Sequence record: NC_023719.1
Direction: 5' to 3' (one strand)
DNA: 64,000 nucleotides
Positions within the stretch are counted from its first letter, which is position 1. Every line of letters starts with the position of its first letter. Under the pieces are notes generated by a model. It was not told the DNA's origin. It saw only the letters and a list, made by a program, of their open reading frames with translations, and made no database searches. The position numbers and the translations under genes were made by a program. This document shows positions 10,284-63,817 of the stretch, one piece after another.

Positions 10284-10868
10284 TTGGAAGATATGGTCAG
10301 TATGCTAAATATATATAAAATTAGTAAACAGATGGAAAAGATTCATAAGAAAGTGACGTTGCTGAATAGAAAACAATCTTCGTTTGGATTAACTGCTGAA
10401 GAGGAAGAAAAGTTACGAGATTATCGATTAGAGTCTTGGATATTACATGAAGAATTAATTGAAACACATTTGGGAATAACAGTAATTCCTTATGTATTAG
10501 ATGATGAATGTACAGCTGCTTTAAGAGATATTCAGAAAGTAATTCCTTGGCGAGGTGGATTAATTAGAAGAGATGGTGAATACGAAGAGATAACAACTAA
10601 AGCAATTGATATATCTGTAGATGAGAGAGACTATATAGCTAAGAAATTAGAAATTTTGCATGAGAATGTTCTTTTGAATTTCGAATCTTTTAGTTCTACT
10701 GAAGAGGGATATGAGTATATGCGAGAGGTATCTAAAGTAGTTTCCACCGAGAAAGATGGGAATGTGTTAGATGTATTAGTTTATTTAGATGCTCGGTATA
10801 GAGAGTTTGCAGAGTTGTTAGATATTCAGTTACAGGAAGTCGAAGTAGTGTGGGAGGATGAAGAATAG
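10284..10868 (+). CDS. Hypothetical acidic protein
   Basis: 194-aa ORF. Confidence 0.75.
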   Translation: MEDMVSMLNIYKISKQMEKIHKKVTLLNRKQSSFGLTAEEEEKLRDYRLESWILHEELIETHLGITVIPYVLDDECTAALRDIQKVIPWRGGLIRRDGEYEEITTKAIDISVDERDYIAKKLEILHENVLLNFESFSSTEEGYEYMREVSKVVSTEKDGNVLDVLVYLDARYREFAELLDIQLQEVEVVWEDEE

Positions 10869-11200
10869 TGTCTAGATTAAAGAAACTTGCTGTTTCTTCG
10901 GAAGAGTTATTAAGAGAAAGAGATATAAATGTTGAAGCTGCTGATATTGCATTAAATGAGATTGGTGAGGGTATTGATGAATTGCACGCTGCTTATTTAA
11001 AGTTATTTCATGGTTTGAGTTCTCTGTATGAAGAGTTCCCAAAATTGTATGATGAAATGAAAAAAGTGATTAAGTTTCCTGATGAGTCTGCTGCTAGAGA
11101 TGTAGCTGATATGAAAGTAGATTTTGAAGATATTAGAGCACATTATAAAGATGAGCAATATTTAGCAAACATATTGAACTTGTATGATGGAGAGAGATAG
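10868..11200 (+). CDS. Hypothetical protein with N-terminal SRLKKLA motif
   Basis: Coupled to upstream stop; motif shared by five other ORFs. Confidence 0.8.
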   Translation: MSRLKKLAVSSEELLRERDINVEAADIALNEIGEGIDELHAAYLKLFHGLSSLYEEFPKLYDEMKKVIKFPDESAARDVADMKVDFEDIRAHYKDEQYLANILNLYDGER

Positions 11201-11203
11201 AGA

Positions 11204-11542
11204 ATGAATAAGAGAAGAAGTAGATTATTGAAATTATCAATATTAAAAACAGCGGCAGATTTAGGATATAAGAATATACCCGATATGTTTGTTGCAAGCG
11301 CTACCAATTATGGATTACAAGCATTATATTGGAGAGAACCAGCAGAAGATGAGAAGACTATTGAGATTTGGAAAACAACTGAAGGGCCGTTTTTAGTAGT
11401 TGAGGGAGATTTTTCTGATGGTGAATGGGGACAACAGGATATTTCTGTTGTAAGTGAGCAAGTTGATATAAGAAGTGCTCTTAGCTTTGCAGAAGCAAAT
11501 TATATGCTTTTACAGAACGAAGAGCCGTATGAGCAAGTATAA
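11204..11542 (+). CDS. Hypothetical protein with N-terminal SRLLKLS motif
   Basis: RBS, terminator follows. Confidence 0.8.
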   Translation: MNKRRSRLLKLSILKTAADLGYKNIPDMFVASATNYGLQALYWREPAEDEKTIEIWKTTEGPFLVVEGDFSDGEWGQQDISVVSEQVDIRSALSFAEANYMLLQNEEPYEQV

Positions 11543-11982
11543 GTTTGAGAGACCTATTTTGGGTCTCTTTTTTGTTTTTACAAAAAGTTACAAAATAATA
11601 CATGTGATTCAACGAGTGCAGCTTGATTCACAGGGTGCAGCTATAAATATAATTAATTAATAGATTAATAAGAATAAATAAAATAAGATATATAAAGATC
11701 GGCACTGCGTGCGCTGTTATTTCTTATCTTATATAATTAACAGATTTCTGTTTCAAAATCAATATGAAAAGATAATTAATTAGTGATATAATTTTAATAA
11801 AACAGACTTTTTTATGAGATTTAATGTTATTTAATGAAATGTTTAGAAAGTGATATTAGAATAAAGATAGCTATATTTTTAAATAATATATCAAGATATG
11901 ATAGTAGTGACATAATGAGTTAAAAAAAGCATGTACATGAAATAAAATAGAACAAGAGATTAGAGTTTTTGGAGGGTTAAAA

Positions 11983-12666
11983 ATGAAAGAAATAGAGAGC
12001 TATGTAGTAGATTGTTATGCAGATATTGAGATGATAGATTTTTTATTAGAAGTTTTACCAGATTATCAGAATGTTCTTATTGAGCGGCATCAGAAATTTG
12101 TAAATTCTTATTTGAAATATAAAAAGAAAATCAGAATGGTTGGAGTAACATATGGTTATTCAGATAAAGACATAAAGAGAATTTTTTGGAGAGTTCAAAG
12201 AAAACTTCTGTTAGAATTTATTAATAGAGTAGATCAAAATAAATTAACTATATCTGAAGCTATAAAGATTCCAAAGAATTTCGATGCATTTTTAATGTGG
12301 CAGTTACGACAATTTAGAGAAGATGCAGAAACAGTATTTATTTATATTCGTAGTAAGATGATCAAGAAACTTAATATAGATGGCGTATCAGTTAAGCGTA
12401 AAGATCAAATAACTGATGTTTTAAAAGAATTGTATACTATAGAAGATTTACAAAGTGTTTTACCAAAAAAGATTTATCCTATTGCTAATGATTTATTGAA
12501 TGGGATGTCATTAACTGAAGTAGCTAAGAAGTATGATAGAAATTTAAATTATTTAATTGTATCTATAGTAGGGGTAAAGAATCCTCGTAGTAAATCAGAG
12601 CGTGGTTGGTTAGCATATTTAGAGAATGACGTTGATAATAGAGTGATACAGTTTCCTGTTAAATAG
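11983..12666 (+). CDS. Hypothetical protein, possible C-terminal HTH
   Basis: GGAGG RBS; LLNGMSLTEVAKKY resembles an HTH. Confidence 0.7.
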   Translation: MKEIESYVVDCYADIEMIDFLLEVLPDYQNVLIERHQKFVNSYLKYKKKIRMVGVTYGYSDKDIKRIFWRVQRKLLLEFINRVDQNKLTISEAIKIPKNFDAFLMWQLRQFREDAETVFIYIRSKMIKKLNIDGVSVKRKDQITDVLKELYTIEDLQSVLPKKIYPIANDLLNGMSLTEVAKKYDRNLNYLIVSIVGVKNPRSKSERGWLAYLENDVDNRVIQFPVK

Positions 12667-12739
12667 AAGGAATTAAAAAATAGTTTACATTTTAATTTTT
12701 ATGTGATATAATTTAATTATAACGTAAAATGTAAACGAG

Positions 12740-13531: not shown

Positions 13532-13554
13532 GTCTAGATCAGTGGAGGAAAGCA

Positions 13555-16146: not shown

Positions 16147-16674
16147 GTGAAAAGATTGATAAAAGCGAGTGATTTAGAGGGTTTAACTGTTGAGATTACT
16201 CCTTATTCGAATGAAGATGATAAATATGGTCACTTTGAATCATATGGTATTAATGCTACTCTTGATGGTCAGCGAGTTGGATTTTTAAATTTATTTGTTT
16301 ATCAAGATTATGTTGGTGGAGAAATTAGTAGACAATTTGAAGGTCAAAAAGTAGAGAAAATGCTTTATTTTGATGATTTTGAAGTTGACTCTAACCAAAG
16401 AGGTAAAGGTATTGCAAATGAGATTTTAAAGAAGCTTGGTGAGCTATATAGAGAAAAATTCTCTGGTTGGCCAATGTTTAATATGTATATTAATCCAGTA
16501 GCGGAATATGCAGTAATAAATGCAATAGCACAGGGTTGGTTACCTGAAGAAGCATTTATAGAAGAATATCAATTAAGAGGTAGTGCTTATTTTGGAGCAG
16601 AAGATCAAATTATTGATTTAAGAAATAAGTTACCTGAAGAATATCAACATTTATTTGTACCAAAGAGGGATTAA
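16147..16674 (+). CDS. GNAT-like acetyltransferase with N-terminal KRLIKAS motif
   Basis: Acetyl-CoA-binding motif VDSNQRGKGIA. Confidence 0.65.
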   Translation: MKRLIKASDLEGLTVEITPYSNEDDKYGHFESYGINATLDGQRVGFLNLFVYQDYVGGEISRQFEGQKVEKMLYFDDFEVDSNQRGKGIANEILKKLGELYREKFSGWPMFNMYINPVAEYAVINAIAQGWLPEEAFIEEYQLRGSAYFGAEDQIIDLRNKLPEEYQHLFVPKRD

Positions 16675-23236: not shown

Positions 23237-23303
23237 AAATGGTTTACATTTCATTGTTTATGTGATATAATATTTATATAAGGTATTAGAAAGGAATGAT
23301 GAA

Positions 23304-23738
23304 ATGGATACTAATTCATTTTTACATGGTAGCATGATTCTTAAAGAAAGTTTGAATAAAAAGTTAGTAGAGTTTGCTGATATCATTGAAGGATATAGTG
23401 TAATAAAGCTTTTAACTGGAGAAATTTCTGAGGATGTGAATGTGAAATTCGCTGAGCAGAAGTTATTAGGTAAGAAAAAAGTGCAGACGATTTTAGGTAA
23501 CAATTATCGTATTAATTTAAATCAAAGTGATGATACATTAGCTTTTGTTATAAAGAAAGATATGATAGAATGTAGTGATATTCAGAGTTATAAAAATACG
23601 CTAAACGAATTAGGATATAAACATAGTATTGAACAACACGCTAGAAGAACAGGGCGTAGTATGGTAGCTGTAGTTGAGATTGATAAATTGGAAGAAGATA
23701 GTATTACACAGGTGTTTGATTTGTTCCAGATTAAATAG
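23304..23738 (+). CDS. Hypothetical protein
   Basis: Early promoter, RBS. Confidence 0.75.
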   Translation: MDTNSFLHGSMILKESLNKKLVEFADIIEGYSVIKLLTGEISEDVNVKFAEQKLLGKKKVQTILGNNYRINLNQSDDTLAFVIKKDMIECSDIQSYKNTLNELGYKHSIEQHARRTGRSMVAVVEIDKLEEDSITQVFDLFQIK

Positions 23739-23749
23739 GGGGTTTTTAT

Positions 23750-24073
23750 ATGTCATCTGTAATTTTTACAATGATGGGTTTCTTATTAGGGGCTCTAATA
23801 GCATTTGTAAAAGGAGGTGAAAAGAAAGGTAGAAGTAAACAGTTTGTTTGCGGACATTGTGAATCAAAGGATACTTTACGTATTCAAAAATTGAGAGATA
23901 GAGATGTTTTCACATGTACGTTTTGCGAAAGAATTATTGATGAAGCAACTGTAAAAATGATGCATAAAGAAGATTATGAAATATTGAAAAAACATCCTGA
24001 GCTATATGAAGAATTTAAACGCGCTAGATTGGAGGGAAGAACTTTTGAAATCCCAAGCAAAGAAAATCATTGA
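23750..24073 (+). CDS. Membrane-anchored zinc-ribbon protein
   Basis: N-terminal TM helix; CGHC...CTFC. Confidence 0.7.
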   Translation: MSSVIFTMMGFLLGALIAFVKGGEKKGRSKQFVCGHCESKDTLRIQKLRDRDVFTCTFCERIIDEATVKMMHKEDYEILKKHPELYEEFKRARLEGRTFEIPSKENH

Positions 24074-25301
24074 TATATTAGAACGAAAAGGTTATGAGGC
24101 GTATTTAATTGGCGGAGCAGTTAGAAATACGCTTCACAATTTCAAGTATGGAGAAGAATTACCAATTAAGGATTTTGACATCGTTACGAATGCATCATGC
24201 GAACAAGTGATGGAATTATTTGAGGATACTGAGGCTAGAGGAGTTCAATTCAATGTAGCTGTGGTAAAGTTAGATGGTTATGAATTTGAAGTAGCTCAGT
24301 ATCGTGGAGAGTCTTATCCTGAAGGTGGATCTCTTCGTCCTGATAAAGTATATCCTGTACAAACTTTAGAGGAAGATTTGAAACGAAGAGATTTCACTAT
24401 TAATGCAATCGCAATGGACAAAATGGATCTTATTAGAGATCCATTAGAAGGTTGTATTGATATAAGAAATAGATTGATTAGAGCGATTGGTGACCCAAAT
24501 GAAAGGTTTTCTGAAGACCCATTGAGAATGATTCGAGCCTTCAGATTTATGTCTCAATTAGATTATTATTTAGATAAGAAAACTAAATTTGGGATTAAAA
24601 ACAACCTTGGTCTATTAAAAAACATACCACATGAAAGAATGAAGGCAGAGATTGACAAGATGTTGCGTGGTCAAGCTGTAGGGGTAGCATTGTTGAATAT
24701 GAAAATGGTAGGTGTTCATAAACATACCTTTTTAAATTCAATAACAAGTCAACAAGTTCCAGTATTAGATGGTGTATTAACTTTATCATATGAGCTGCTC
24801 AACGATGTGATACATAAATTAGAAGAATATGATAGAGACCAACTAGACATTACGGAACTTTATTATTTGTTGTATTACTACACAAGTTATGATGAAGCTG
24901 AAAAGAGTTTAAAAGAATCAATGTTTTTAAATGAAAAAGAAATTGAAAGAGTTTTATTGTTATTGAAGTACAATAAGATTCTGTTATCTAAAGATAATTT
25001 AGATATTTTCAATTTAGTAAAAGAAATTGGTGAGCAACGAGGGTTATCATATTTAAAAGATATTATAGATTCATATCATAAACTTCATCGAATTAATTTA
25101 GATTACTTGCTTGAAAAGTCATTATTTAAGAGTCAGCTTCCTTATAATGGAAATGATATAGTGATGTATGGCGAAAAGTTAAATATTAAGCCGGGTAAAT
25201 GGGTAGGGCAAGTGTTAGATAAAATGCAATTATATGCTATATCTGAAGTGGAGTACGAAATAGAGACTATAATAGAAGAAATGGTTGGTGATGGGAAATG
25301 A
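24045..25301 (+). CDS. cca: Class II tRNA nucleotidyltransferase (CCA-adding family)
   Basis: YLIGGAVRN, KDFDIV, DLKRRDFTINAIA, EDPLRMIRAFRF; start moved to TTG 24045 after GGAGG. Confidence 0.9.
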   Translation: MKSQAKKIIDILERKGYEAYLIGGAVRNTLHNFKYGEELPIKDFDIVTNASCEQVMELFEDTEARGVQFNVAVVKLDGYEFEVAQYRGESYPEGGSLRPDKVYPVQTLEEDLKRRDFTINAIAMDKMDLIRDPLEGCIDIRNRLIRAIGDPNERFSEDPLRMIRAFRFMSQLDYYLDKKTKFGIKNNLGLLKNIPHERMKAEIDKMLRGQAVGVALLNMKMVGVHKHTFLNSITSQQVPVLDGVLTLSYELLNDVIHKLEEYDRDQLDITELYYLLYYYTSYDEAEKSLKESMFLNEKEIERVLLLLKYNKILLSKDNLDIFNLVKEIGEQRGLSYLKDIIDSYHKLHRINLDYLLEKSLFKSQLPYNGNDIVMYGEKLNIKPGKWVGQVLDKMQLYAISEVEYEIETIIEEMVGDGK

Positions 25302-29814: not shown

Positions 29815-30312
29815 TTGAAAAGATTGTTGAAAACGTCTTCAGGAACTAAAAGAGTATATCATGGTACTTCCTTGGAGAATTTTATGCAGATTGCTTCTTC
29901 TGGTAAGTTAATATCAAATCCAGGAGAAGGCGTTGGTAGTTGGAATGCTGGCCACGTATACCTTGGCACAGAATATGGAGTAGCTTCTATACATGGATAT
30001 GGAGCAGCGCAAAGATATTATGATGAGTTTGACGGTGGTCCACCTTATGTTGTCTTAGAGTTTGAAATTGATGAGTCTAGATTGGTGACAGACCCAGATA
30101 ATAACCCTGAATGTGGAAGTTGGCAAGAGAGTGCTGCTAAAAATGGTCAAGTTGCCGTTGAAGGCGAAATAGATTTACCAGCAAGTACAACTGTTCATTT
30201 TATGGGTGGAGAAGAGTGGAGTCTTGATTTGGCTACCGAGCTTGGTAACTGGGAAAGTTTTTATGAACAACATAAGCAAGATTTATTAGTACCTGGCGAG
30301 GAAGATTATTAA
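29815..30312 (+). CDS. ADP-ribosyltransferase-fold protein with N-terminal KRLLKTS motif
   Basis: VYHGTS...I...G.L, HVYL, VLEFEI; start moved to TTG 29815 after AGGTGG. Confidence 0.65.
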   Translation: MKRLLKTSSGTKRVYHGTSLENFMQIASSGKLISNPGEGVGSWNAGHVYLGTEYGVASIHGYGAAQRYYDEFDGGPPYVVLEFEIDESRLVTDPDNNPECGSWQESAAKNGQVAVEGEIDLPASTTVHFMGGEEWSLDLATELGNWESFYEQHKQDLLVPGEEDY

Positions 30313-30420
30313 TGAAGAGAGTTACTTCTCTTCATTTTTTTATTTTATTTTTAAAAAACGGTTTACACTATACATAAAACGTTATATAATAAGATTATAA
30401 ATAAATAAGGAGTGGTTTTA

Positions 30421-30885
30421 TTGGAGAAAGTATATCACGGAACTTCTTTAGGGAATTTTAAAAATATATATAATACTGGGAAGTTGATACCTAATGAAGG
30501 AAATGGAGTTGGGAGTTGGAACCCAGGACATGTTTATCTTGGAACAAGTTATGGAGTCGCTTTAGCTCATGGTTATGGAGCTAGTCCAACAATGGAAGAC
30601 GTTGGTGGAGAACCTTACGTGGTATTAGAATTTAATATTAATCGCGAGTTATTACTTAAGGATCCAGATAATAATATAGAATGTAATACTTGGGAAGAGA
30701 GTTCAAATAAAAATGGTCAGGTATCAGTGTTTGGAGAATTTCAAATCCCAGAAGATACTATTGTTCATTTTATTGGTGGAGAGTGTTGGGATACTACAGT
30801 GACCACTAATATTAAAAATTGGGAAGAAGCTTATAAACATCATGAAGAAGCTCTACAAGTACCTGGATGGGATGAAGATGAGTGA
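30421..30885 (+). CDS. ADP-ribosyltransferase-fold protein, close paralog of 29815
   Basis: Same motifs; start moved to TTG 30421 after AAGGAG. Confidence 0.65.
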   Translation: MEKVYHGTSLGNFKNIYNTGKLIPNEGNGVGSWNPGHVYLGTSYGVALAHGYGASPTMEDVGGEPYVVLEFNINRELLLKDPDNNIECNTWEESSNKNGQVSVFGEFQIPEDTIVHFIGGECWDTTVTTNIKNWEEAYKHHEEALQVPGWDEDE

Positions 30886-33523: not shown

Positions 33524-34354
33524 ATGAAAAAAAATTCAAGACTTAAGAGAATAAGTGTTTTTAATGATCAGTTAGAAAAAGTTTTGCAACTCGCTAAATT
33601 TAATGGAGTTGAAACTGAACAATATTCTAAATCTGAATCTACACCGATGTCAGAGTTGAAATTTCTTTTATCATTTCAAACAACAACTGACATACCTAAA
33701 CTAGTTATTGGTATGGAACAAGATATTATTGATACCATTAAAGAATCTCAAAATGTGTTTGATAATTTATTCAATGAAGTTAATATTAAAGCGTTAAGCG
33801 ATGAGTATGTAGATAGATATCCTGAAGGTTATTTATATAATTATTTTTCTGAAGAAGAAATTGAAGAATTTAAAAAACAATATGCCGATCAACAAGGTAT
33901 AGATTATCAAGTTTCCGAGCAGGTGGATAATGATGTAGATACTTTATTAATGTATTTTGATGCAATCCAAAGAGCTAATGATGATAAATTAAATGAAATC
34001 GTTAATTCAAAAGGATTTAGTGATGCGGTAATGGTTGTGGAACAAAAAGGTTTTAAAATTGATGAAATAATTAAAGAGTATAACTATAATTTTGATGAAT
34101 TCAGCAGACTTAAATCTAAAAATAAAACCATTGAAACTATTGAAAAAGCATATAATAAAGTTAAAAATGATGACTCTGATACGTACAATGCTCCTGAAAC
34201 AGATGATACGGATGAGTTAATAAGAGGAGCAGCTAAATTAGCATATGAAAAGTTAGGTGTTGATATAGACGGTTACAGATACGCATTTCAAAATGATCTT
34301 TCGGTTTCAAAAATACAAATTATTGATGAAAAAACGTTTAAAATTTCAATGTAA
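33524..34354 (+). CDS. Acidic hypothetical protein with N-terminal SRLKRIS motif
   Basis: AAGGAG RBS, terminator follows. Confidence 0.8.
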   Translation: MKKNSRLKRISVFNDQLEKVLQLAKFNGVETEQYSKSESTPMSELKFLLSFQTTTDIPKLVIGMEQDIIDTIKESQNVFDNLFNEVNIKALSDEYVDRYPEGYLYNYFSEEEIEEFKKQYADQQGIDYQVSEQVDNDVDTLLMYFDAIQRANDDKLNEIVNSKGFSDAVMVVEQKGFKIDEIIKEYNYNFDEFSRLKSKNKTIETIEKAYNKVKNDDSDTYNAPETDDTDELIRGAAKLAYEKLGVDIDGYRYAFQNDLSVSKIQIIDEKTFKISM

Positions 34355-34461
34355 CATAAAAATTAGAGAAGAGAAATCTTCTCTTTTTTTTTTAACTTTA
34401 CGAAATAAACTGTTTACATTATCAAACAATTGTTATATAATAAATATATAAATAATTAATC

Positions 34462-34594
34462 AAAACCGATTGATTGCTGGTTTTAATAAACCTTATACCC
34501 TGAGTAGTCTATCTACTAGAAACTACTTGAAAACTAAAACTCCCCACCGTGCCGTTGGGCTATTCTCCGAGTATGGGGTTAGAGGAGAATAGAA
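34462..34594 (+). ncRNA. Putative structured RNA behind an early promoter
   Basis: No ORF or RBS; GC-rich helices 34489-98 / 34573-82 and 34562-70 / 34586-94. Confidence 0.55.
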
Positions 34595-34664
34595 AATATT
34601 TAAAAAAAAATTAAAAATTTTGTTAAATAAATTCTAACTATTGATAATAATATATCATCTTAAT

Positions 34665-34757
34665 AATCATTTATGAAGCGGAAAGAACAGTTACTTCAAC
34701 TTTAATCCAAACTTGAAACCAAAACTATACTGTTTTTTAAAAAACTCATAAATGATT
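34665..34757 (+). ncRNA. Y-RNA-like module Y2
   Basis: TGAAGCGG-AAAG-AACAGTTACTTC...CTGTTTT..AACTCA in a 12-bp inverted repeat. Confidence 0.8.
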
Positions 34758-34857
34758 CAGTTTTTATCTGAAAGAACTAAAAATCATAAGTTCGCTTTCA
34801 TATAGTTTCTTATTACTTTGTATAAGAGGATAACTATATAAAGTTAAATGTAAATCA

Positions 34858-34967
34858 ATTTAATTATAATTAATGAAGCGGGAAAACAGCTACTTCGATG
34901 AAAATCTATTACACAATTAAAGCTTTTTAATCTGTTTTCACTTATCTCATTGATTTTATTTTAAATT
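34858..34967 (+). ncRNA. Y-RNA-like module Y3
   Basis: TGAAGCGG-GAA-AACAGCTACTTC...CTGTTTTC..ATCTCA. Confidence 0.8.
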
Positions 34968-35091
34968 ACTTATTAATTATTGATGCGGACGTAACAGTTA
35001 CTTCATACAAGATAATGGTATAACATGATTCCTCGCGCTCAACGGGGAAACTACACTGTTACAAATTATCTCAATAATTAATAAGTAATTT
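34963..35091 (+). ncRNA. Y-RNA-like module Y4
   Basis: TGATGCGG-ACGT-AACAGTTACTTC...CTGTTAC..ATCTCA; perfect 21-bp closing inverted repeat. Confidence 0.82.
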
Positions 35092-35097
35092 AAAGAA

Positions 35098-35176
35098 TCC
35101 TTGTTGAAGCGGTAATAACAGTTACTTCATACATTTGGCGTACACAAGCACTGTTATAAATAATCTCAACAATGGA
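35098..35176 (+). ncRNA. Y-RNA-like module Y5
   Basis: TGAAGCGG-TAAT-AACAGTTACTTC...CTGTTAT..ATCTCA. Confidence 0.82.
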
Positions 35177-35191
35177 GTTTAAAAATCAATG

Positions 35192-35361
35192 ATAACTTAA
35201 TACATATATTGATGCGGGATGAACAGTTACTTCTAATATATTGAGAATATTACAAATAATAGATTTAACTTTTTGCTAGATCCTTGGTTGGTTTTTTATC
35301 AATTTACACACGGTTTTTTACTTACTGTTTGTTAAAGATCTCAATATATGTATTAAGTTAT
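35192..35361 (+). ncRNA. Y-RNA-like module Y6
   Basis: TGATGCGG-GATG-AACAGTTACTTC...CTGTTT..ATCTCA; perfect closing repeat of about 21 bp; directly upstream of TROVE gene. Confidence 0.8.
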
Positions 35362-35413
35362 TATTTTTTTTTTGAACATAATAATGTACATAAAAACTAG
35401 GGGGAATAATCTA

Positions 35414-37611: not shown

Positions 37612-38118
37612 TTGTTCTTAGTGGATAATCAAATTAAAGCATTAAATGTTATGTTACAATATTTAGATTCTCTTAATAGTCTTAGTAAAAGTTCTTTAAG
37701 TTCTGATGCTTCAAAATTAGTAAATACTACAATTATTGAAGTAATTAATACATTAAATCGTGAAATAGGTATTAAAGATTCTAAAGCTGCTTTAGCTGAA
37801 GCACAACTTAAAGGATCACCTCTTAGTGGTAAAGCTTACACAAAAGATATTCCAAATGGAAAAACTTTTAAATTTAATGGTGGTTTTGAAGATCCAAAAC
37901 AAGAAGATTCTGATGATAAGAGAAATCTTTCTGACATTGCATCAGATATTCAAGATCAAAGTATAGATCTAATAACATCTCTTATTAAAGATGTAGCTAC
38001 TATTAATGGTGACATTAGTAAAATTAATACACAAAAGCTAAAAGAATTAGAAGAGGCTTTTATTAAAAAATTAAAAAAATTAGCAACACCGTTCGATATT
38101 TATGATAAAGAACAATAA
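37612..38118 (+). CDS. Hypothetical protein
   Basis: AAGGAG RBS; start may be 37621. Confidence 0.7.
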   Translation: MFLVDNQIKALNVMLQYLDSLNSLSKSSLSSDASKLVNTTIIEVINTLNREIGIKDSKAALAEAQLKGSPLSGKAYTKDIPNGKTFKFNGGFEDPKQEDSDDKRNLSDIASDIQDQSIDLITSLIKDVATINGDISKINTQKLKELEEAFIKKLKKLATPFDIYDKEQ

Positions 38119-38127
38119 TTAAAATAT

Positions 38128-38215
38128 GGGGTCGTGGGTGAGAGGCTGAAACCACCTCCCTGCTAAGGAGGCAGTCCGCAAGGGCTCGAGGGTTCGAATC
38201 CCTCCGACTCCGCCA
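38128..38215 (+). tRNA. tRNA-Ser(GCU)
   Basis: Cloverleaf with long variable arm; loop CTGCTAA; G73, CCA encoded. Confidence 0.93.
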
Positions 38216-38363
38216 GCTTTATCAATATATATATCAATTTCGCTTATTGGCAACTTTAAGGGAAATAATTGCAAACACATGCCTTGAGAAAGCATGAATC
38301 TTTACCAGAAAAATTCAGTATCTTGCCTCTTAATTGAGGTAAGATAAAACTGGATTTGAAGGA

Positions 38364-38639
38364 ATGGGAGTAATTACAGTGATTACAGTGATTAGTGAAA
38401 TTGAAGAATATTTAAAAGAATTAGAAGTTATCAAGAGTTTTCACGTATCGATTAAGAAAGCTGAAAAATCAAGATGGCATGTAAGAGATAAGTTGGTTAT
38501 TAGAATTTGGGTTAATAAAGATTTATGGGATTCTCAATTAGTGATGACAACTTTAACTGAAGATTATTCTTTTGAAGAAAACATTACAAAAATTTGTAAG
38601 GGAATTTATGTACCAGAATACGATATTTATTACGAATAA
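38364..38639 (+). CDS. Hypothetical protein
   Basis: ORF between tRNAs. Confidence 0.65.
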   Translation: MGVITVITVISEIEEYLKELEVIKSFHVSIKKAEKSRWHVRDKLVIRIWVNKDLWDSQLVMTTLTEDYSFEENITKICKGIYVPEYDIYYE

Positions 38640-38666
38640 AAAATCTAATGGGAATTAGGTGGTAGT

Positions 38667-38861
38667 ATGCTAATTGTAATGAACGTAGTTTTTGTTATAT
38701 GTTGTTTAGCATTTTTATTTGGTAGTATTGGTTATGTAGTTTCTTGTTTTAATGAAAAGTTAGATAAATACCATGGTATTTTAAGTTTAACAGCTTTAGT
38801 TGGTATGTTAAGTACGTTTTTCTTTGGTTTTCTTATTTTTGTAATTTATGGAGTAGTTTAA
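38667..38861 (+). CDS. Small membrane protein
   Basis: Two TM helices; AGGTGG RBS. Confidence 0.7.
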   Translation: MLIVMNVVFVICCLAFLFGSIGYVVSCFNEKLDKYHGILSLTALVGMLSTFFFGFLIFVIYGVV

Positions 38862-38920
38862 AAAAGTTTTAACTAGTTGTTATATTTCCAATGATTTTGT
38901 ATATAATAGATATACCTTAT

Positions 38921-38996
38921 TCACCAGTAGCTCAGCGGTAGTAGCACCTGACTGTTAATCAGGGGGTCGTAGGTTCGAATCCTACCTGGTGAGCCA
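38921..38996 (+). tRNA. tRNA-Asn(GUU)
   Basis: U1-A72 acceptor, loop CTGTTAA, GCCA end. Confidence 0.93.
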
Positions 38997-39002
38997 TATT
39001 AA

Positions 39003-39077
39003 TGCCGGATAGCCAAGTGGTAAGGCAATGGACTTTGACTCCATGATACAGAGGTTCGAATCCTTTTCCGGCAGCCA
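39003..39077 (+). tRNA. tRNA-Gln(UUG)
   Basis: Loop CTTTGAC, GCCA end. Confidence 0.92.
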
Positions 39078-39088
39078 AATAGTAATAC

Positions 39089-39228
39089 TGCCAAGAAGCA
39101 TGTCCTGGTGTAATCGCAGAAACGCGAATCATGCACACTATGAAAATAGTGGTTATCTAAGGCTAATGAGTATAAAAGTCGACGTATACTTTCTTAGATA
39201 CGAAGGTTCGATTCCTTCCTCGGCAACC
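39089..39228 (+). ncRNA. Oversized tRNA-like RNA (about 140 nt)
   Basis: Acceptor TGCCAAG / CTCGGCA and canonical T-arm GAAGG-TTCGATT-CCTTC, but expanded D-loop and giant variable arm. Confidence 0.7.
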
Positions 39229-39233
39229 GTTAT

Positions 39234-39308
39234 GGTGGTTGTAGCTCAATTGGTTAGAGCGCTAGATTGTGGATCTAGAGGTTGTGGGTTCGATCCCCAT
39301 CATCCACC
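39234..39308 (+). tRNA. tRNA-His(GUG), CCA incomplete
   Basis: G-1 and C73; loop TTGTGGA. Confidence 0.9.
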
Positions 39309-39319
39309 CTTATAGATTT

Positions 39320-39394
39320 GGGGTGTTGGCGAAGTGATAACGCATCCGACTTTCTATCGGACATTCGCGGGTTTGAATCCCGTACACCCTTCCA
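39320..39394 (+). tRNA. Atypical tRNA with UUC (Glu) anticodon
   Basis: Cloverleaf; loop CTTTCTA; T-loop TTTGAAT; CCA encoded. Confidence 0.7.
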
Positions 39395-39527
39395 GTAATG
39401 ATTAGCCAAGCAGGCGGTTTAAGTTATCGCAACTTAACAAAATGCCAAGATGAATGTTATCCCGGCAGCTTATGAGAGATTGTTGGGAATAGCTTCTCTT
39501 GATTTTAAATTTAAAGGAGGAATTAAT

Positions 39528-39809
39528 ATTAGTAGTAAGTTCATGACTGAACTAATGTTAAAGAAACCAAGAAATAACGCAAAGAAAGAAAAAGTTGAAG
39601 AAAAGAGTTCAACGATTGTTTTCTTAGAAGAACTTAGGGAAAAAGTTATTCAAAGTGACTTAAAGGAACAATTTGAAGAAGAAATGAAGCATTATCGCGA
39701 GAGTTACGATTTAGTAGAATTGCAGAAGATAGTTGTTAAGTATTCTGATATATTTGGTTTAGAAAGACCAAAGCAGATTGAACAGATGATTTCTAAATAT
39801 TTAGATTAA
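39528..39809 (+). CDS. Hypothetical protein, probable ATT start
   Basis: AAAGGAGG 7 nt before in-frame ATT; alternative ATG at 39543. Confidence 0.65.
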   Translation: MSSKFMTELMLKKPRNNAKKEKVEEKSSTIVFLEELREKVIQSDLKEQFEEEMKHYRESYDLVELQKIVVKYSDIFGLERPKQIEQMISKYLD

Positions 39810-39853
39810 GAATTAAAAATTTAAGGGCAGAAAGGTTTTATTTATAATATTAT

Positions 39854-39930
39854 AGCTGGCGGGAGGTAGGCATCTCGGGGAGTTTCATGAACTCTCATTA
39901 ATTCGGTTCGAATCCGGAGCCCAGCAACCA
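39854..39930 (+). tRNA. Atypical tRNA with CAU anticodon
   Basis: Loop TTCATGA, T-arm TTCGG-TTCGAAT-CCGGA, ACCA end; bulged acceptor and short D-loop. Confidence 0.65.
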
Positions 39931-39931
39931 T

Positions 39932-40003
39932 GGTTCATTGGTCAAGTGGTAAAGACACCTTCCCTTACGGAAGGTAACATAGGTTCGACTCCTATATGGG
40001 CCG
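39932..40003 (+). tRNA. Glu/Asp-like tRNA body with aberrant anticodon loop (identity unresolved)
   Basis: Acceptor, D and T arms canonical; anticodon arm CCTTC-CCTTACG-GAAGG; CCA not encoded. Confidence 0.6.
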
Positions 40004-40059
40004 CCTAATATGTTGCAGAGATTAAGCTAATTGTAGCGCTGCAGCATTATTCTTAACGA

Positions 40060-40368
40060 GGGATTGTTAAGGATTCGACAGGGGAAAATAGTATAAGACA
40101 TGATACTCGTAAAGCATACGTTACATGCTAAGTTAAATATAACTAACAACGAATTACAAGTAGCCTAGTTAATAGGTGCCAAAACAATAGAGTTGCTCTA
40201 ACATCTATTTGAGGTTCAAAGATTTGAGCTATTTCTTACTTTAGAATAAAGTAAGTGGTGGAGCCTAGAGAAAACGCTGTAGAAACTAACTATTCAAATT
40301 GTAAATGGTATCAAACAAGTGTCTATATGAAAGTCTTCTGGACGCGGGTTCGACTCCCGCCAGTTCCA
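40060..40368 (+). ncRNA. ssrA: tmRNA; predicted tag (A)NNELQVA*
   Basis: 5' GGGATTGTTAAGGATTCGACAGGG; G3-U70; TAAATATAACT resume context; 3' GGACGCGGGTTCGACTCCCGCCAGTTCCA. Confidence 0.92.
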
Positions 40369-40559
40369 TATTTAGTTTTAAGAGGTTAGGCAACCATTTA
40401 TGACTCTGTTGAAATTACTTTTAACAGTAGGTTGTATATAAAAATGCCCATCTTGGTGAGATGCCAAGCTCTATTCAAAAGGAGATGAACAATATGTGGG
40501 AAACTCTTTTAGATATTATAGATGAAGTTAGAGATATTACTGGTCTATAGTTAATACAT

Positions 40560-40631
40560 GCGGGTGTGGTATAACGGCTATTATTTCTGCCTTCCAAGCA
40601 GACGATACGGGTTCGATTCCCGTTACTCGCT
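40560..40631 (+). tRNA. tRNA-Gly(UCC), CCA not encoded
   Basis: Loop CTTCCAA, U73. Confidence 0.9.
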
Positions 40632-40766
40632 CTTATTTGGGGATTTTAGATCCTGTACATTTTGTACGAAAAATGCAAGTTCAGATTTACAGAGGCTTAA
40701 GGTCTCGTACACTAGATGTACAAAAATGATCGATTAAAGACTGCGATTTATTCTCAGTCTTTCTAT

Positions 40767-40846
40767 TTAACAAATTATTGAAGCGGTAGTAACAGATACT
40801 TCTTGCTGATGAAAAAACTGTTACAGTTAATCTCAATAGTTTTTAA
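40767..40846 (+). ncRNA. Y-RNA-like module Y7 (minimal, detached copy)
   Basis: TGAAGCGG-TAGT-AACAGATACTTC, 15-nt loop, CTGTTAC..ATCTCA. Confidence 0.78.
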
Positions 40847-41232
40847 CATATAATTTGCAAATAGTAGTATGGTATAGTAAAATGGGTCAAGTGTGTTGAT
40901 TCCCTTATTATTGCTATATTATTTGATTACATTAATAAAGCTGATATTAGTTAGTTACTTAGTGAAGCCACTGGTGAATCTAAGGGTTAGGGGAGATTAA
41001 TTGAATCAGCTTTTAATATGCCAAGTAGAGCTCTTTTAAGGGTGATAGTTCAAAGGACTGTATCGAAAGATTATGAGTGAAAATCTCATTACTTGGCTCC
41101 TCCAATGATATAGTGTGTTAAAGAGGTATCTAATTAGATATCTCTTTTTTATTTGTTTTTAAAAAATTGTTTATGTAGTTAAAGAATGATGATATAATTA
41201 AATTATAAAGAATAATATAAAGAGGTGATAGA

Positions 41233-41640
41233 ATGATTAATACTATTGAGGAGATTAAAGATAAACATGGAGAATCTGTAGATTGGATAGAAATAAGTAA
41301 GAATGAAAAATTGTCTGAAAATTTTATGAGAACATTTAAGAATGAATTAGATTGGAATTATCTTGGTTATAGTCAAAAAATGTCTGAAGATTTTATAAGA
41401 GAATTTCAGGATAAGGTAAACTGGTATTATGTTAGTTCATATCAAAAATTATCTGAAAGTTTTATAGTAGAGTTTAAAGATAAGGTAGAATGGAGTTATA
41501 TTAGTTATTATCAATTGCTATCTAGGGATTTTATAATTGAATTTTCAAATAAATTACAATATAAATATTTAGTGAAAAATTACAATTTATCTAAAGAATT
41601 GCAAGATGAAGTTAAAGTATTATTCGAACTTTTAAAATAA
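41233..41640 (+). CDS. 23-aa tryptophan-repeat protein
   Basis: Four repeats plus ELQDEV tail. Confidence 0.85.
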   Translation: MINTIEEIKDKHGESVDWIEISKNEKLSENFMRTFKNELDWNYLGYSQKMSEDFIREFQDKVNWYYVSSYQKLSESFIVEFKDKVEWSYISYYQLLSRDFIIEFSNKLQYKYLVKNYNLSKELQDEVKVLFELLK

Positions 41641-41683
41641 ATTTGTTAAAGAAACGATGACTATGGTTTATAATATATTATAG

Positions 41684-41953
41684 ATTAATTCATTCATAAG
41701 ACGACAACATGAAATATTGAATCGAGTAGGTGGACTACAAGCGATATATAGATGGATTGAAACCCCAGTCATGATTTCGAAAATACTAGTAAAGTAGAAA
41801 TTAAGTGATCTATATATTGTGCGGATAGTGGCTTAAAGTAATTTAAGTTTGTAGTTAAGGGAGAGCTTGGCCGGCTCGAAGGATCGGGGTACAAAATAAG
41901 ATGGGTAATCGTTAACTTTCGACTCGATGTGTAGATTAAATATTTCAATTAAT
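41684..41953 (+). ncRNA. About 270-nt structured RNA of unknown family
   Basis: Own promoter, no ORF, nested long-range helices, possible pseudoknot. Confidence 0.7.
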
Positions 41954-42000
41954 GTTAAAAAAGCTCGACTAATTTGATATAATAAATTTATTAATGAAAA

Positions 42001-42080
42001 GGACCGTTGCGCCGAGATGGTCGAAGGCACCCAGCTCATAACTGGGAAAATCACCGGGGGTTCGACTCCCTCACGGTCCA
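42001..42080 (+). tRNA. tRNA with CAU anticodon (Ile2 or Met), CCA not encoded
   Basis: Loop CTCATAA; GGACC acceptor resembles Bacillus tRNA-Ile2; slightly long variable region. Confidence 0.8.
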
Positions 42081-42248
42081 TAGCTCCATGGTTTGCTTGG
42101 GTCCATTAATCCCTCGAAAGCGTGTTTTACTAAAGAGATTCTTTAATAGAATCTCTTTTTTTAATACATGTATTTAAAAAACAGTTTACAATACATAGTT
42201 TATATGGTATAATGAATATATATAAATAAAAACATAAGGTGTGATAGT

Positions 42249-48310: not shown

Positions 48311-48402
48311 AAATAGAGGTTTTTTATTTATTTTATAAAAACAGTTTACAAATACATAGACGAATGATATAATGAATATATAAATAAGAAGGAGTGTTGT
48401 AA

Positions 48403-48834
48403 TTGAAAACTTTATACCATTCAACATCGTTATATAATTGTAAAAGTATTATTGAAACGGGATTTATTGAATCAAGACTAGGGCGAGGTATAGGTTTTGA
48501 ATTTACTGGTGATGAAGAAGACTTTAATAATAATTTAAAAAAAGCTGATGGTTATGTTTTTTTATCTGACAGTTTTGAATTAGTATCAGGATTGTATGGC
48601 TCAGAGTCATTCTTTGAACCCGTAGTGATTGAATTAAATATAGATAATATTATATTATTACCTGATGATATCGATTGTCCCGAGTGTAAAACATGGCAGG
48701 AAAGTTTAGAGAAACTAAATCAATTAAAGGTTAAAGCGCCTATAAGTATTAATAACATTGTAAAAATACATGTTTTTAAGGAAAATAAAGTTTTAACAGT
48801 AAATGAATTTAAAGAGTATTATAAAGAAGGGTAA
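48403..48834 (+). CDS. ADP-ribosyltransferase-fold protein (third, divergent paralog)
   Basis: LYHSTS..N...I...G.I, YVFL, VIEL.I, LPD..D.PEC.TWQES shared with 29815 and 30421. Confidence 0.65.
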   Translation: MKTLYHSTSLYNCKSIIETGFIESRLGRGIGFEFTGDEEDFNNNLKKADGYVFLSDSFELVSGLYGSESFFEPVVIELNIDNIILLPDDIDCPECKTWQESLEKLNQLKVKAPISINNIVKIHVFKENKVLTVNEFKEYYKEG

Positions 48835-60015: not shown

Positions 60016-60108
60016 AATATTTAATCACTGAGGATTCAGATTAATTCCTCAGTGATTTTAATTTATTTTCCTATATTATATATAATGATTATATTAAATA
60101 TAGGAAGG

Positions 60109-60363: not shown

Positions 60364-60431
60364 ATAATTAGGTATTTTTTCCTTATTAGGTTAATATAAT
60401 ATAATAACAATATAACCTGGAGGGAAATAAA

Positions 60432-60740
60432 ATGGCTAATCGTCAACAACGTAGAGCAGGGAAGAAATTACTCAATAAGCCAGAGGTTAAGCAATACGTA
60501 GATCAATTCTGTATGGAGTTTTCAAGCATGCTGGTTGAAAGTTGCGAAGTTGCTAGGGAAGAAGCGAAAGCAAATAATACAAAGATTGATTTTGAAAAAA
60601 TGCATAATCAATTAGAACCACTTATGAGAACTAAGGGTGAAGAGTTAGGTAAAAAAGTGCAAGAAATGGTGCAGAAGCAGAATAACAAGTCTAAGATTTC
60701 TTTTAATTCTTATACAGAAAATATAAATTTAAAACATTGA
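60432..60740 (+). CDS. Hypothetical protein
   Basis: GGAGG RBS; NRQQRR N-terminus. Confidence 0.75.
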   Translation: MANRQQRRAGKKLLNKPEVKQYVDQFCMEFSSMLVESCEVAREEAKANNTKIDFEKMHNQLEPLMRTKGEELGKKVQEMVQKQNNKSKISFNSYTENINLKH

Positions 60741-60930
60741 AATACAAATGTAATTTAGCGGTAAAAAAAGAAAACAAAATATATGATACAATAAAAAGGT
60801 AACTTGATTAGTTGCCTTTTTTTATTTTTAAAAAAAATCTAAAAAACTGTTTACATTACTACAAATTGTGATATAATAAATATATAAGGTGATAAGGTAA
60901 ATACTACAATACAGATTAGGGGTTAGACAA

Positions 60931-61701: not shown

Positions 61702-61823
61702 ACATATACAAAAGGCTAAGATATTATTAATATATCTTAGCTTTGAGCTATAAAAACTGTTTACATAGTATGCAACTTTAGTTATAATATATATATAAGG
61801 ATTTAATAAGGAGTGGTAAAGAA

Positions 61824-62759
61824 TTGAATACTACAAACGAAGAATCATTTGATAAATTATTAAGTTTAATAGATGAAGCAACCAACATGCTAGATAGGTT
61901 AAAAACAATTAATGAAACACTTGAAGAGATGCAAGGAAATAGTGAAGTTGGAAGACGAGTACCTTTTGGTATGAATTACACTATGCTTTTTGACGCTATT
62001 GATAACTTAGAGGATTTCTTGAGAATTAAAGGGCAAGTTGAAAAAGCAAAAGAAGACTTTAGTCTAATTGATACTTTTGAAATAGGCGATATTGCTAAAG
62101 CTAAAGTTGATATTAGAATTGGTGGTAGACAAGAAATGCATTATAGTAATGCTCGTTTAGATGTAACTGGATATGTTCGTTATTCAAAGGATAAAACATT
62201 TTCTATTATTGATTTTGATGGTGTTGATTATGTATTAGAAGATTTTACTAACAATTATTTATTATTTGTCGATAAGGGTTTAATGAATACGTTTTTTAAT
62301 AAAACCGAAGAAAAAGAGACTAGGAGTTTCTTAAGAGTTGATTTTTTATTTACTGGGATTAAGAAGAAGTATTTAAAGAATTTATCTAGTATACGTTTAT
62401 TTTCAGAAAAAGCTAGAGAGCGTACTAATAATAGTTGGGAATTTGGGCAGAATTATGATGATCAAACTCCTTTAGTTAAATTAACAATCGATGAGACATT
62501 TGGTAATATGTGTTCAGTTTATTTTAATGAGAAGTTAGCTCAAAATTATACTGACTTTATATTATATTTTAATGATATTTTTGCAGTAGGTTTTAGTCAA
62601 AGTAAGAGTAATAAAGATATTTACAAATATAATGGAAAGATTAGTTTTTATACAAAAGAGAAGGGAAAGTATGGAGTTCATTATTTCCCTAAAGATGTTT
62701 TGTATGGAACAACAAGTGATCGTATTTTAACTTTACTTGAAGTAAAACAATTAAATTAA
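61824..62759 (+). CDS. Hypothetical protein
   Basis: Early promoter, AAGGAG RBS. Confidence 0.8.
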   Translation: MNTTNEESFDKLLSLIDEATNMLDRLKTINETLEEMQGNSEVGRRVPFGMNYTMLFDAIDNLEDFLRIKGQVEKAKEDFSLIDTFEIGDIAKAKVDIRIGGRQEMHYSNARLDVTGYVRYSKDKTFSIIDFDGVDYVLEDFTNNYLLFVDKGLMNTFFNKTEEKETRSFLRVDFLFTGIKKKYLKNLSSIRLFSEKARERTNNSWEFGQNYDDQTPLVKLTIDETFGNMCSVYFNEKLAQNYTDFILYFNDIFAVGFSQSKSNKDIYKYNGKISFYTKEKGKYGVHYFPKDVLYGTTSDRILTLLEVKQLN

Positions 62760-62781
62760 AATAATGGAAGGGAGAAAATAT

Positions 62782-62985
62782 ATGATTAATACAAGAGATA
62801 TTGCTTTAGATATTCTTATGGGAGAATTAGATACGTCTGATTTAGTGAATGATGTTGAGTTTCTAAAAGAAGTTGATGAGTCTATTTTACTATTAGTTAA
62901 GAAAAATAATACTTGGTCAGATTCTTTTGTTGCTAAGAAGCGTAAAGCAATATTGATTAAAATTGAGAAATTGTCAGAAGGGTGA
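62782..62985 (+). CDS. Small hypothetical protein
   Basis: GGGAG RBS; start moved to ATG 62782. Confidence 0.65.
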   Translation: MINTRDIALDILMGELDTSDLVNDVEFLKEVDESILLLVKKNNTWSDSFVAKKRKAILIKIEKLSEG

Positions 62986-62991
62986 ATGTAA

Positions 62992-63438
62992 GTGGATGTA
63001 TTTAAAGAGTTAGAAGATATTAATAAGAATCTCAAGAAGTTGAGGGATTCAATTTACGAGAACAATGTATTTGAAAAGTCTACTAAATTACAGCAAGATA
63101 CGTTTTATAGAATGTTAAAGGTCTTGATAGATAAAACTATTACTTACATGGATAACTTCAATGATAAAAATCATGTAATTAAGACTAGTGAAGATATTGT
63201 TAAAATGCAAAACGAATTGAAAAATAGTGAAATAACTTTTTATTTAAATACTTTTCAACAAAAGTTGAGTTGGTATTATGAAAATGATAAGTCTGGAGAC
63301 AGTTTTATCCCCGCTTCAGATATGATGATTTTATGGCCATTAAGAGCTATTAATGAAAGAATGTATCGCTACTTATTTAATCAAACTCACGATCATAAGT
63401 TTGATAATTTCTTTAATGAAATAGATGAACAAGTGTAA
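62992..63438 (+). CDS. Hypothetical protein
   Basis: Co-directional ORF. Confidence 0.7.
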   Translation: MDVFKELEDINKNLKKLRDSIYENNVFEKSTKLQQDTFYRMLKVLIDKTITYMDNFNDKNHVIKTSEDIVKMQNELKNSEITFYLNTFQQKLSWYYENDKSGDSFIPASDMMILWPLRAINERMYRYLFNQTHDHKFDNFFNEIDEQV

Positions 63439-63496
63439 TAGATATAAAAACTTCTCTTATTTTGTAGTTAAATACGAATAAGAGAGGTTTTTTATT

Positions 63497-63817
63497 GTGT
63501 CTAGACTTAGAAAATTAGCAAACTTATCAGAAGAGCTTGGAGAAGAATACTCAACAGCGAGCGGGAAAGTAACTCCTTATCATATATTGTTTAAAGATAA
63601 TGGTGATGAAATTGCTTCTATGGATGTGGAAGCCGCTATACAATTTTGTTCTACAAAAATAGATGACTTAAATGAACAATATAAGAGTGACCCAAGTTAC
63701 TATATGATTATTGACCAAGAGAAAGAAGAGTTCTTGCAGTCATTGCGTGATTGTCAAAATGGTATGGATGTAGTATTTACTATTAAAGATTATTTATTAA
63801 GAGCAGATGAGAAGTAA
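63497..63817 (+). CDS. Hypothetical protein with N-terminal SRLRKLA motif
   Basis: GAGAGG RBS; motif shared with 10868. Confidence 0.75.
   Translation: MSRLRKLANLSEELGEEYSTASGKVTPYHILFKDNGDEIASMDVEAAIQFCSTKIDDLNEQYKSDPSYYMIIDQEKEEFLQSLRDCQNGMDVVFTIKDYLLRADEK

Follow-up and report, generated by a model that had tools for sequence, protein, structure and literature searches.

Among the described systems closest to the one analyzed here is the capsid-targeting sequence (CTS) of bacteriophage T4, which reads MKTYQEFIAE; T4 also packages an ADP-ribosyltransferase (ART), Alt, to which ModA and ModB can be compared. Another system is known from Staphylococcus phage 80alpha, in which the capsid and scaffold proteins carry an L27-like N-terminal extension (LKLNLQFFA) that mimics a host ribosomal protein and is cleaved by Prp. 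In T-even phages, the CTS is the sole conserved feature of diverse internal anti-defence proteins and loads them into the scaffolding core (PMC3012670). Here, we analyze a short N-terminal peptide, referred to as the tag, of Bacillus/Lysinibacillus phage G. The tag was noticed in a stretch of 64,000 nucleotides (the window), which is identical in sequence to positions 372001-436000, + strand, of the phage G record (JN638751.1 / NC_023719.1). An earlier note on this stretch had listed six proteins with the tag and had interpreted it as a portable address for packaging and injection, or as a docking or degradation motif. The facts reported below require that the tag is a functional short linear motif near the N-terminus, which can be attached to any soluble protein and is used clade-wide.

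Census of the N-Terminal Motif

Genome-wide counts refer to the whole 497,513-bp genome of phage G, which was rebuilt and matches the window exactly in the window region. The gene set consists of 664 genes (132,254 residues) called by a simple rule that combines an open reading frame with a Shine-Dalgarno sequence. We used the strict motif [SK]RL.K.[AS] for counting, and a looser pattern together with inspection for a larger census. In 19 of the predicted proteins, the strict motif begins within residues 1-7. As chance models, residues 2-14 were shuffled within each protein, or the N-terminal columns were shuffled across proteins; the expected counts are 0.09 and 0.07, respectively, with a maximum of 3 in 2,000 trials. 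The scan of all N-termini that the earlier note had recommended thus gave a result far above chance (19 versus ~0.08 expected). There is one further strict match among the 132,254 residues, the second copy of a tandem at residue 14 of gp123; all 20 occurrences are within the first 20 residues of their proteins, and the number of truly internal copies is zero. The looser census adds gp5, gp9, gp13, gp53, gp57, gp172, gp194, gp233, gp296, gp334 and gp610 and results in ~35 tagged proteins, or ~5% of the proteome. A six-frame scan of the genome revealed no additional credible tag bearer, and all tagged starts that were compared coincide with those of an independent annotation.

For 69 non-identical tagged proteins of phage G and related phages, the consensus reads M-(K/S)-R-L-(K/I/V/R)-(K/R)-(K/I/A/L)-(A/S)-(N/E/D), in which the Arg is invariant, the Leu is present in 65 proteins, and conservation stops after the A/S-(N/E/D) pair. 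The tag usually starts at residue 2, and up to 8 mostly basic residues may precede it; its charge is +3 to +5. Tandem double tags are found in gp123 and in some proteins of the relatives. Use of the motif at C-termini is unconvincing (8 loose matches in the phage G proteome versus ~3 expected). The ART-like paralogs gp141 (record 81748-82587) and gp233 (record 163172-163849, minus strand) do have, besides the tag at the N-terminus, basic tag-like C-termini, …KIKRLKKFNK and …SRLRRVKRG.

When the tags were removed and the bodies compared by BLASTP (E<=1e-3), three multi-member families and a number of singletons were obtained, ~25 families in total. The tagged members of the ART-like family are gp53, gp123, gp141, gp251, gp336, gp531 and gp610, as well as gp233, which has the variant MTRLLKLKKLAS; the untagged gp532 and gp568 begin two or three residues ahead of a conserved (V/L)YH(G/S)TS. 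All three members of the gp38/gp347/gp675 family are tagged, and in the GNAT family gp508 is tagged and its paralogs gp628 and gp678 are untagged. Searches for homologs of gp508, gp346 and gp334 returned phage G itself as the sole match. The bodies of tagged proteins are strongly acidic, with a median net charge per 100 residues of -10.9 versus -1.7 for the other proteins (Mann-Whitney p=7e-12). A hydrophobic stretch after the tag, defined as a 14-residue segment with a mean hydropathy of >=1.8 within residues 7-40, is present in 0 of 35 tagged proteins compared to 50 of the 629 others; therefore, the tag is not a signal peptide. A Sec-type signal peptide was rejected as a candidate because the basic n-region is present, but the h-region is absent in 35/35 bearers.

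Selection at the Peptide Level

An important property of the tag is that its DNA is not conserved. The start codons of the tagged genes vary (ATG, GTG, TTG), and within the tag Arg is encoded by AGA, AGG, CGT, CGA and CGC, Leu by TTA, TTG, CTT and CTA, and Ser by both of its codon families. The frequencies are typical of the genome: AGR codons make up 72% of the invariant Arg positions compared to 71% genome-wide, and TTR codons make up 77% of the tag Leu positions compared to 73%. The ribosome-binding site alone is common to the regions upstream of the tagged genes, and other upstream DNA is unconserved. Because codon use is genome-typical, starts vary, and only the Shine-Dalgarno sequence is common upstream, selection acts on the peptide. 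In a relative with 43% G+C, the R-L pair is kept and Lys is replaced by Arg (MRRLRRQA, MRRLRRHA). Taken together with codon use and the unconserved upstream DNA, this makes an origin of the tag from a promoter, leader or translational operator very unlikely. A nucleotide-level cassette as the origin of the tag was rejected because of codon usage and the unconserved upstream DNA.

Tagged Genes in the Window and the ART-Like Family

The six tagged genes of the window and their untagged paralogs are listed in Table 1, together with tagged proteins from elsewhere in the genome for which a domain was recognized and with other features discussed below. The six peptides are in frame at the positions given by the earlier note and are preceded by Shine-Dalgarno-like sequences, and the RefSeq/GenBank starts agree; no further instance exists in the window, so that the original list was complete. 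The description of the bodies as unrelated and mostly acidic also holds: the six proteins have no mutual BLASTP similarity at the threshold used (the match between gp500 and gp592 is confined to the first 17 residues), and all six are acidic, with -7 to -14 net charge per 100 residues (gp500, -12). The GNAT-like assignment of gp508 was borne out by a match to Pfam Acetyltransf_1 (25.0 bits with a cut-off of 20.7, E 2.5e-5). For gp500, there was no Pfam or PHROG match, and searches of the ESM Atlas with gp539 gave weak leads to coiled-coil or helical proteins.

Table 1. Tagged genes, untagged paralogs and other features. Coordinates refer to the window unless marked as those of the record.
Feature	Coordinates	Strand	Start codon	Tag and its position	Description
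gp500	10868..11200	+	GTG	MSRLKKLA, nt 10868-10891	110 aa, unknown function
gp501	11204..11542	+	ATG	SRLLKLS, residues 6-12 after MNKRR, nt 11219-11239	112 aa, unknown function
gp508	16147..16674	+	GTG	MKRLIKAS, nt 16147-16170	175 aa, GNAT acetyltransferase-like
gp531	29815..30312	+	TTG	MKRLLKTS, nt 29815-29838	165 aa, ART fold (predicted)
gp532	30421..30885	+		untagged, starts MEKVYHGTS	gp531 paralog
gp539	33524..34354	+	ATG	SRLKRIS, residues 5-11 after MKKN, nt 33536-33556	276 aa, unknown function
gp568	48403..48834	+		untagged, starts MKTLYHSTS	second untagged ART-like paralog
gp592	63497..63817	+	GTG	MSRLRKLA, nt 63497-63520	106 aa, unknown function
gp5				tagged	LysM
gp53				tagged	weak PARP match, below Pfam threshold
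gp284				tagged	ParB_N
gp334				tagged	nucleoside 2-deoxyribosyltransferase-like; annotated NUDIX hydrolase
gp345				tagged	SLOG
gp346				tagged	ferritin-like
gp11	record 10276-11457				head module, no family match
gp27	record 23289-24137				major capsid protein
Cassette ahead of gp532	30362-30420				promoter-leader
Cassette ahead of gp568	48340-48402				promoter-leader
Cassette ahead of gp628	record 455500-455552				promoter-leader
Cassette ahead of gp610	record 446650-446708				promoter-leader
Hairpin RNA	34940-35110	+			~137 nt, in unannotated gap 34355-35413
Promoter ahead of hairpin RNA	34413-34441				sigma-A-like
tRNA cluster	38100-42100				includes the phage transfer-messenger RNA (tmRNA, 40060-371)

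The tag of gp531 is followed by a 5-residue linker and then by the motif VYHGTS, and gp532 is 58% identical to gp531 over 150 residues in an alignment that starts just past the tag; thus, the observation that the neighbouring paralog lacks exactly the peptide proved correct. In an AlphaFold model of gp531 built with 35 homologs, the mean predicted local distance difference test (pLDDT) value is 92, and residues 1-10 form a coil with a pLDDT of 66. This low-confidence coil places the tag outside the ART fold, and the tag is thus predicted to be an unstructured N-terminal extension.

The model has an ART-type fold, as the earlier note had suspected. In a Foldseek comparison with the PDB, all of the 50 best matches are chains of the ART superfamily (probability up to 0.99), including the A subunits of pertussis-like and cholera toxins, Tpt1/KptA, TreTu, Arr, DarT and PARP, with weak match scores (E>=3.9e-3, template-modelling scores of 0.3-0.5). 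With a profile of the family, the best PDB sequences were Tpt1/KptA and PARP1, non-significant and all above E 0.04. The family, to which gp531 belongs as phrog_13493 and the profile of which gp532 matches from position 12, has a nearly invariant His in the HGT motif and conserved D93, W103, S106 and Q112, with no confident catalytic Glu. The designation ART-like is therefore used here as a prediction that is supported at the level of the fold.

An exhaustive HMMER search with gp531 among 1.84 billion proteins yielded 50 cluster representatives, 36 of which match the tag pattern, and several more have near variants (e.g., MNKLRKLA and MGRLLRHA), so that ~40 of the 50 are tagged. The tag is always located 4-6 residues ahead of LYHGT, and a minority of the representatives begin directly at the fold, like gp532. 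One untagged relative, found on Logan contigs, adjoins genes for a nicotinamide mononucleotide (NMN) transporter, a NUDIX protein and a NadR-like protein (CTP_transf_like + AAA_28). The neighbours of this single relative suggest a role of the family linked to nicotinamide adenine dinucleotide (NAD).

Head Module and Relatives of Phage G

The tagged genes are scattered over the genome and are concentrated in the head-morphogenesis module. Six of the 14 genes called from gp5 to gp20 are tagged (gp5, gp9, gp10, gp13, gp17 and gp20; odds ratio 16, Fisher p=3e-5), and a looser variant is present in gp12. The tagged genes lie around the portal gene gp14 and gp19, which matches a head-maturation-protease PHROG. 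The gene directly downstream of the protease, gp20, encodes a protein that looks small and helical or coiled-coil (a weak lead from the ESM Atlas), and no homolog was found in other GenBank phages. The portal, prohead protease, decoration, terminase, tail, baseplate and replication proteins of phage G have no N-terminal tag. The major capsid protein (MCP) gp27 contains a tag-like YLISKA at residues 11-16, which could be a shared docking or processing site. The pattern derived from the tag, which this peptide matches, has only three other non-tag matches in the proteome. The peptide was spotted post hoc and is not independent evidence. Another protein of the head module, gp11, has a net charge of -65 in 393 residues and is a candidate acidic scaffold or core component to which the basic tag could bind; in two relatives, the gp11 orthologs have M-KRL(N/E)(R/K)IA at an internal position.

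Searching IMG/VR with the portal, we found 13 metagenomic loci with portals 60-84% identical to that of phage G. In these loci, the orthologs of gp9, gp10, gp13, gp17 and gp20 almost always have the tag, in forms such as SRLRKIA, TRLKKIA, KRLVKKS, KRLIRKA and the tandem KRLVKEKRLKRLIKA, and the residues past the tag diverge. Among the 189 distinct proteins of the loci, 16 occurrences of the motif are N-terminal and 4 are internal; at least one of the latter is probably due to a mis-joined start. A degenerate DNA pattern for MKRLIKK(A/S) detected 88 stretches in IMG/VR. Where the contig is unrelated to phage G, the octamer serves as the n-region in two families of secreted or membrane proteins. 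The large G-like contigs (100-416 kb) have it at the start of soluble proteins, several per contig, including orthologs of gp172, gp213 and the ParB-like gp284.

The earlier interpretation of the tag as a portable N-terminal address is thus upheld by selection at the peptide level, ~25 unrelated families, tagged and untagged paralogs, tandem copies, conservation in the clade and the predicted disordered extension.

Expression and Other Features of the Window

Promoters of the sigma-A type cluster at 375-475 kb of the genome, which places the window in the early region. Between 29690 and 34450 of the window (+ strand), there are seven 11/12 matches to TTTACA-N17-TATAAT, each ahead of one small gene, and with the intrinsic terminators behind the genes they form a string of monocistronic early units. 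Each of gp531, gp532 and gp539 has a promoter of this type, and the leaders of the tagged gp531 and gp539 are ~90 nt long compared to 23-38 nt for the untagged neighbours. Good sigma-A-type promoters also precede gp508 and gp610; therefore, gp531, gp539, gp508 and gp610 are probably made early and not with the head proteins.

Of the 35 tagged genes, 6 have the sequence CTTAT[AT]T at 35-42 nt upstream, compared to 6 of the 629 others, a difference that is suggestive only; the sequence is also found at the same distance ahead of the head-module gene gp2. The best enriched upstream 8-mer, TATTTTCT, was discarded since it mostly represents T-tracts of upstream terminators. Inspection by eye of the regions upstream of structural genes gave no clear late-promoter motif, and the public runs searched for RNA sequencing of phage G infection contained metagenomes only. 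A near-identical promoter-leader cassette (TG-TATAAT … ATAAATAAATAAGGAGTGGTT) precedes gp532, gp568, gp628 and gp610 (Table 1); gp610 is tagged, and the other three are the untagged paralogs in families that have tagged members.

Upstream of the TROVE/Ro60-like gene gp540, by ~320 nt, the window encodes a hairpin RNA with a minimum free energy of -44.6 kcal/mol (z = -7.3 versus shuffles), which matches miRNA-precursor models of Rfam only weakly. This RNA is a candidate for a Y-RNA-like molecule that partners gp540, the Ro-like protein. The tRNA cluster and the tmRNA of the window were confirmed by Rfam.

Discussion

We propose, tentatively and as the leading reading, that the tag is a capsid or prohead-core targeting signal, similar to the T4 CTS in its working and unrelated in sequence, and we assign this reading a probability of roughly 45%. 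The interior of the prohead is the best-fitting destination because in every relative the head-assembly module encodes five or six small tagged proteins. The tag would dock its bearers into the assembling prohead, at the scaffold or core or at the inner surface of the shell. The very large capsid would then enclose small head-core proteins and varied acidic enzymes, namely ART-fold proteins, GNAT, nucleoside-deoxyribosyltransferase-like/NUDIX, SLOG, ParB-like and ferritin-like proteins, all of which would be delivered along with the DNA. The docking, onto a component of the scaffold or core, might be electrostatic with a contribution of leucine, as suggested by the basic tag on acidic cargo, the hyper-acidic gp11 and the tag-like N-arm of the MCP, and the tag may be clipped at the conserved small residue (A/S) by the prohead protease gp19. 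The classes of cargo, with an expanded ART-fold family, a GNAT, and NAD- and nucleotide-processing enzymes, would fit virion-delivered takeover or counter-defence enzymes. Packaging and injection of the tagged proteins have indirect support only, from the enrichment of the tag in the head module, its conservation on the orthologs there, the YLISKA of the MCP, and the likeness of the cargo to T4 Alt and the internal proteins.

Several observations weigh against this proposal. The 69 tagged proteins have no conserved protease-type site after the tag, where conservation ends; the first Glu falls at the same position whether or not a protein is tagged, and early Glu is not enriched. The tag does not resemble the T4 CTS in sequence, and the cargo is acidic, unlike the basic internal proteins of T4. 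Moreover, the untagged paralogs of tagged families are likewise acidic, and therefore the acidity may belong to the families and not to the tag. As judged from their promoters, early production of gp531, gp539, gp508 and gp610 probably fits cargo of a late assembly step less well. Tagged gp346 is among the proteins detected in phage G particles; however, this proves little because the same 2025 particle proteome also holds gyrase, helicases and half of the nucleic-acid enzymes (PMC12484599). In the text of that paper, gp346 is the only tagged gene product and no propeptide is mentioned, and the tag is not mentioned in the tail paper (PMC8570332) or in a 2026 review of jumbo phages (PMC13282480). 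A full-text literature search for the peptide strings gave no match, the 2020 capsid paper with its table of virion mass spectrometry being outside the reach of this search.

A docking or localization motif with a partner outside the capsid is a rather unlikely explanation of the tag. The partner could be the membrane surface, the nucleoid or replication factory, a phage compartment or condensate, or a chaperone of the Hsp70 type, which would recognize basic residues that flank Leu/Ile. Consistent with this possibility, signal peptides and membrane anchors of other phages have the identical octamer as their basic n-region, the strongly basic tag is attached to acidic bodies, early promoters precede the genes of several bearers, and many cargo proteins are directed at NAD or nucleotides, activities that would be of use in the cytoplasm. 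However, the tag has just two hydrophobic residues and no h-region, which does not suffice for membrane insertion, chimallin is reportedly absent from phage G (PMC13282480), and a partner outside the capsid leaves the tags on the small head-module proteins of every relative unexplained. We consider it unlikely that the tag is instead a degron, recognized by the phage ClpX/ClpP (gp258/gp257) or by a host AAA+ protease, which would serve the timed removal of takeover enzymes and scaffolding-type proteins. Phage G does encode ClpP- and ClpX-like proteins, both of which were detected by proteomics, early promoters precede several of the tagged genes, an unfoldase would find in the tag the exposed, disordered N-terminal peptide that it requires, and the untagged gp532 and gp568 could be long-lived versions. 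On the other hand, the tag appears unlike the N-terminal recognition motifs of ClpX that were reportedly described by Flynn et al. in 2003. The phage tmRNA in the window already gives the phage ClpXP an obvious class of substrates, and enrichment in the head module and tandem duplication better suit a docking signal. Finally, 1-8 residues are tolerated ahead of the tag, which is therefore not an N-end-rule signal.

A broader version, which we regard as decidedly improbable, is a general sorting signal of G-like megaphages with a destination that is not, or not only, the capsid: the ~35 acidic enzymes and head-core proteins would be gathered by a linear 'zip code' at an assembly or takeover site built by the phage, such as a compartment, condensate or membrane patch, or handed to its ClpXP. 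By far the least credible explanation is that the tag has no function of its own and is a by-product of a nucleotide element (a promoter, a ribosome-binding site or translation enhancer, or a RegA-like operator), or that it merely reflects lysine-rich AT-rich starts or shared ancestry. The N-termini are indeed rich in lysine in this genome of 30% G+C, and a conserved promoter-leader cassette is common to several early genes. Nevertheless, shuffles that keep the composition give 0.08 and not 19 occurrences, the codon families of Arg and Leu are used in genome-typical proportions, upstream DNA is unconserved, the bodies of the bearers are unrelated, and the relative with 43% G+C retains R-L and swaps K for R (MRRLRRQA). 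A nucleotide-level or non-functional origin is thus largely refuted.

If the tag does load the head, dozens of enzymes would be delivered along with the DNA of phage G and of its uncultured relatives, among them NAD-directed ART-fold, acetyltransferase and nucleotide-processing enzymes. T4 has three internal proteins plus Alt, a far smaller set, and such a load could help to explain the size of the capsid. The tag would then be an eight-residue handle for the packaging of foreign proteins into the largest cultivated phage capsid, and the proteins that uncultured megaphages inject could be listed directly from their sequences by a search of N-termini. Should the tag be a general sorting signal, phage cell biology would gain its first simple, transferable sorting peptide. 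Whatever the destination, a strictly N-terminal, peptide-selected and clade-conserved short linear motif is clean and testable.

Comparison with Known Systems

The n-region of Gram-positive Sec signal peptides is similar to the tag in that the identical octamer MKRLIKK(A/S) opens secreted and membrane proteins of unrelated phages; it differs in that the tag is followed by a hydrophobic core in 0/35 phage G bearers and likewise lacks such a core in the relatives. The extension of 80alpha also comes from a Firmicute phage, is a short N-terminal motif common to head-assembly proteins that a few residues may precede, and is removed next to a small residue; however, LKLNLQFFA has to be compared with KRLIKKA, and the 80alpha extension is restricted to capsid and scaffold proteins. 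The cargo-loading peptides of encapsulins are short disordered terminal peptides that dock unrelated enzymes, classically ferritin-like ones, inside a shell of the HK97 fold, and phage G has an HK97-fold MCP and the tagged ferritin-like gp346. Encapsulin peptides are usually C-terminal and hydrophobic or Gly-rich, whereas the tag is N-terminal and basic.

The likeness to the T4 CTS concerns several properties. In both cases, a short (~8-10 residues) N-terminal peptide is the only similarity among diverse small proteins scattered over the genome, the prohead protease is encoded by the phage, and the ART-fold family of phage G has tagged and untagged paralogs, which can be compared to Alt versus ModA/ModB in T4. 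The differences are the sequence, with the basic M-K-R-L-I-K-K-S in phage G compared to MKTYQEFIAE, the lack of an L/I-x-E cleavage site in the tag, the acidic cargo of phage G compared to the basic cargo of T4, and the far larger number of bearers (~35). In T4, the function of the CTS is portable (PMC3012670). A further difference is that the phage G tag is unconserved at the DNA level. Relative to the principle of a T4-type CTS, an unrelated sequence, a far larger set of cargo and clade-wide use in G-like megaphages would be new.

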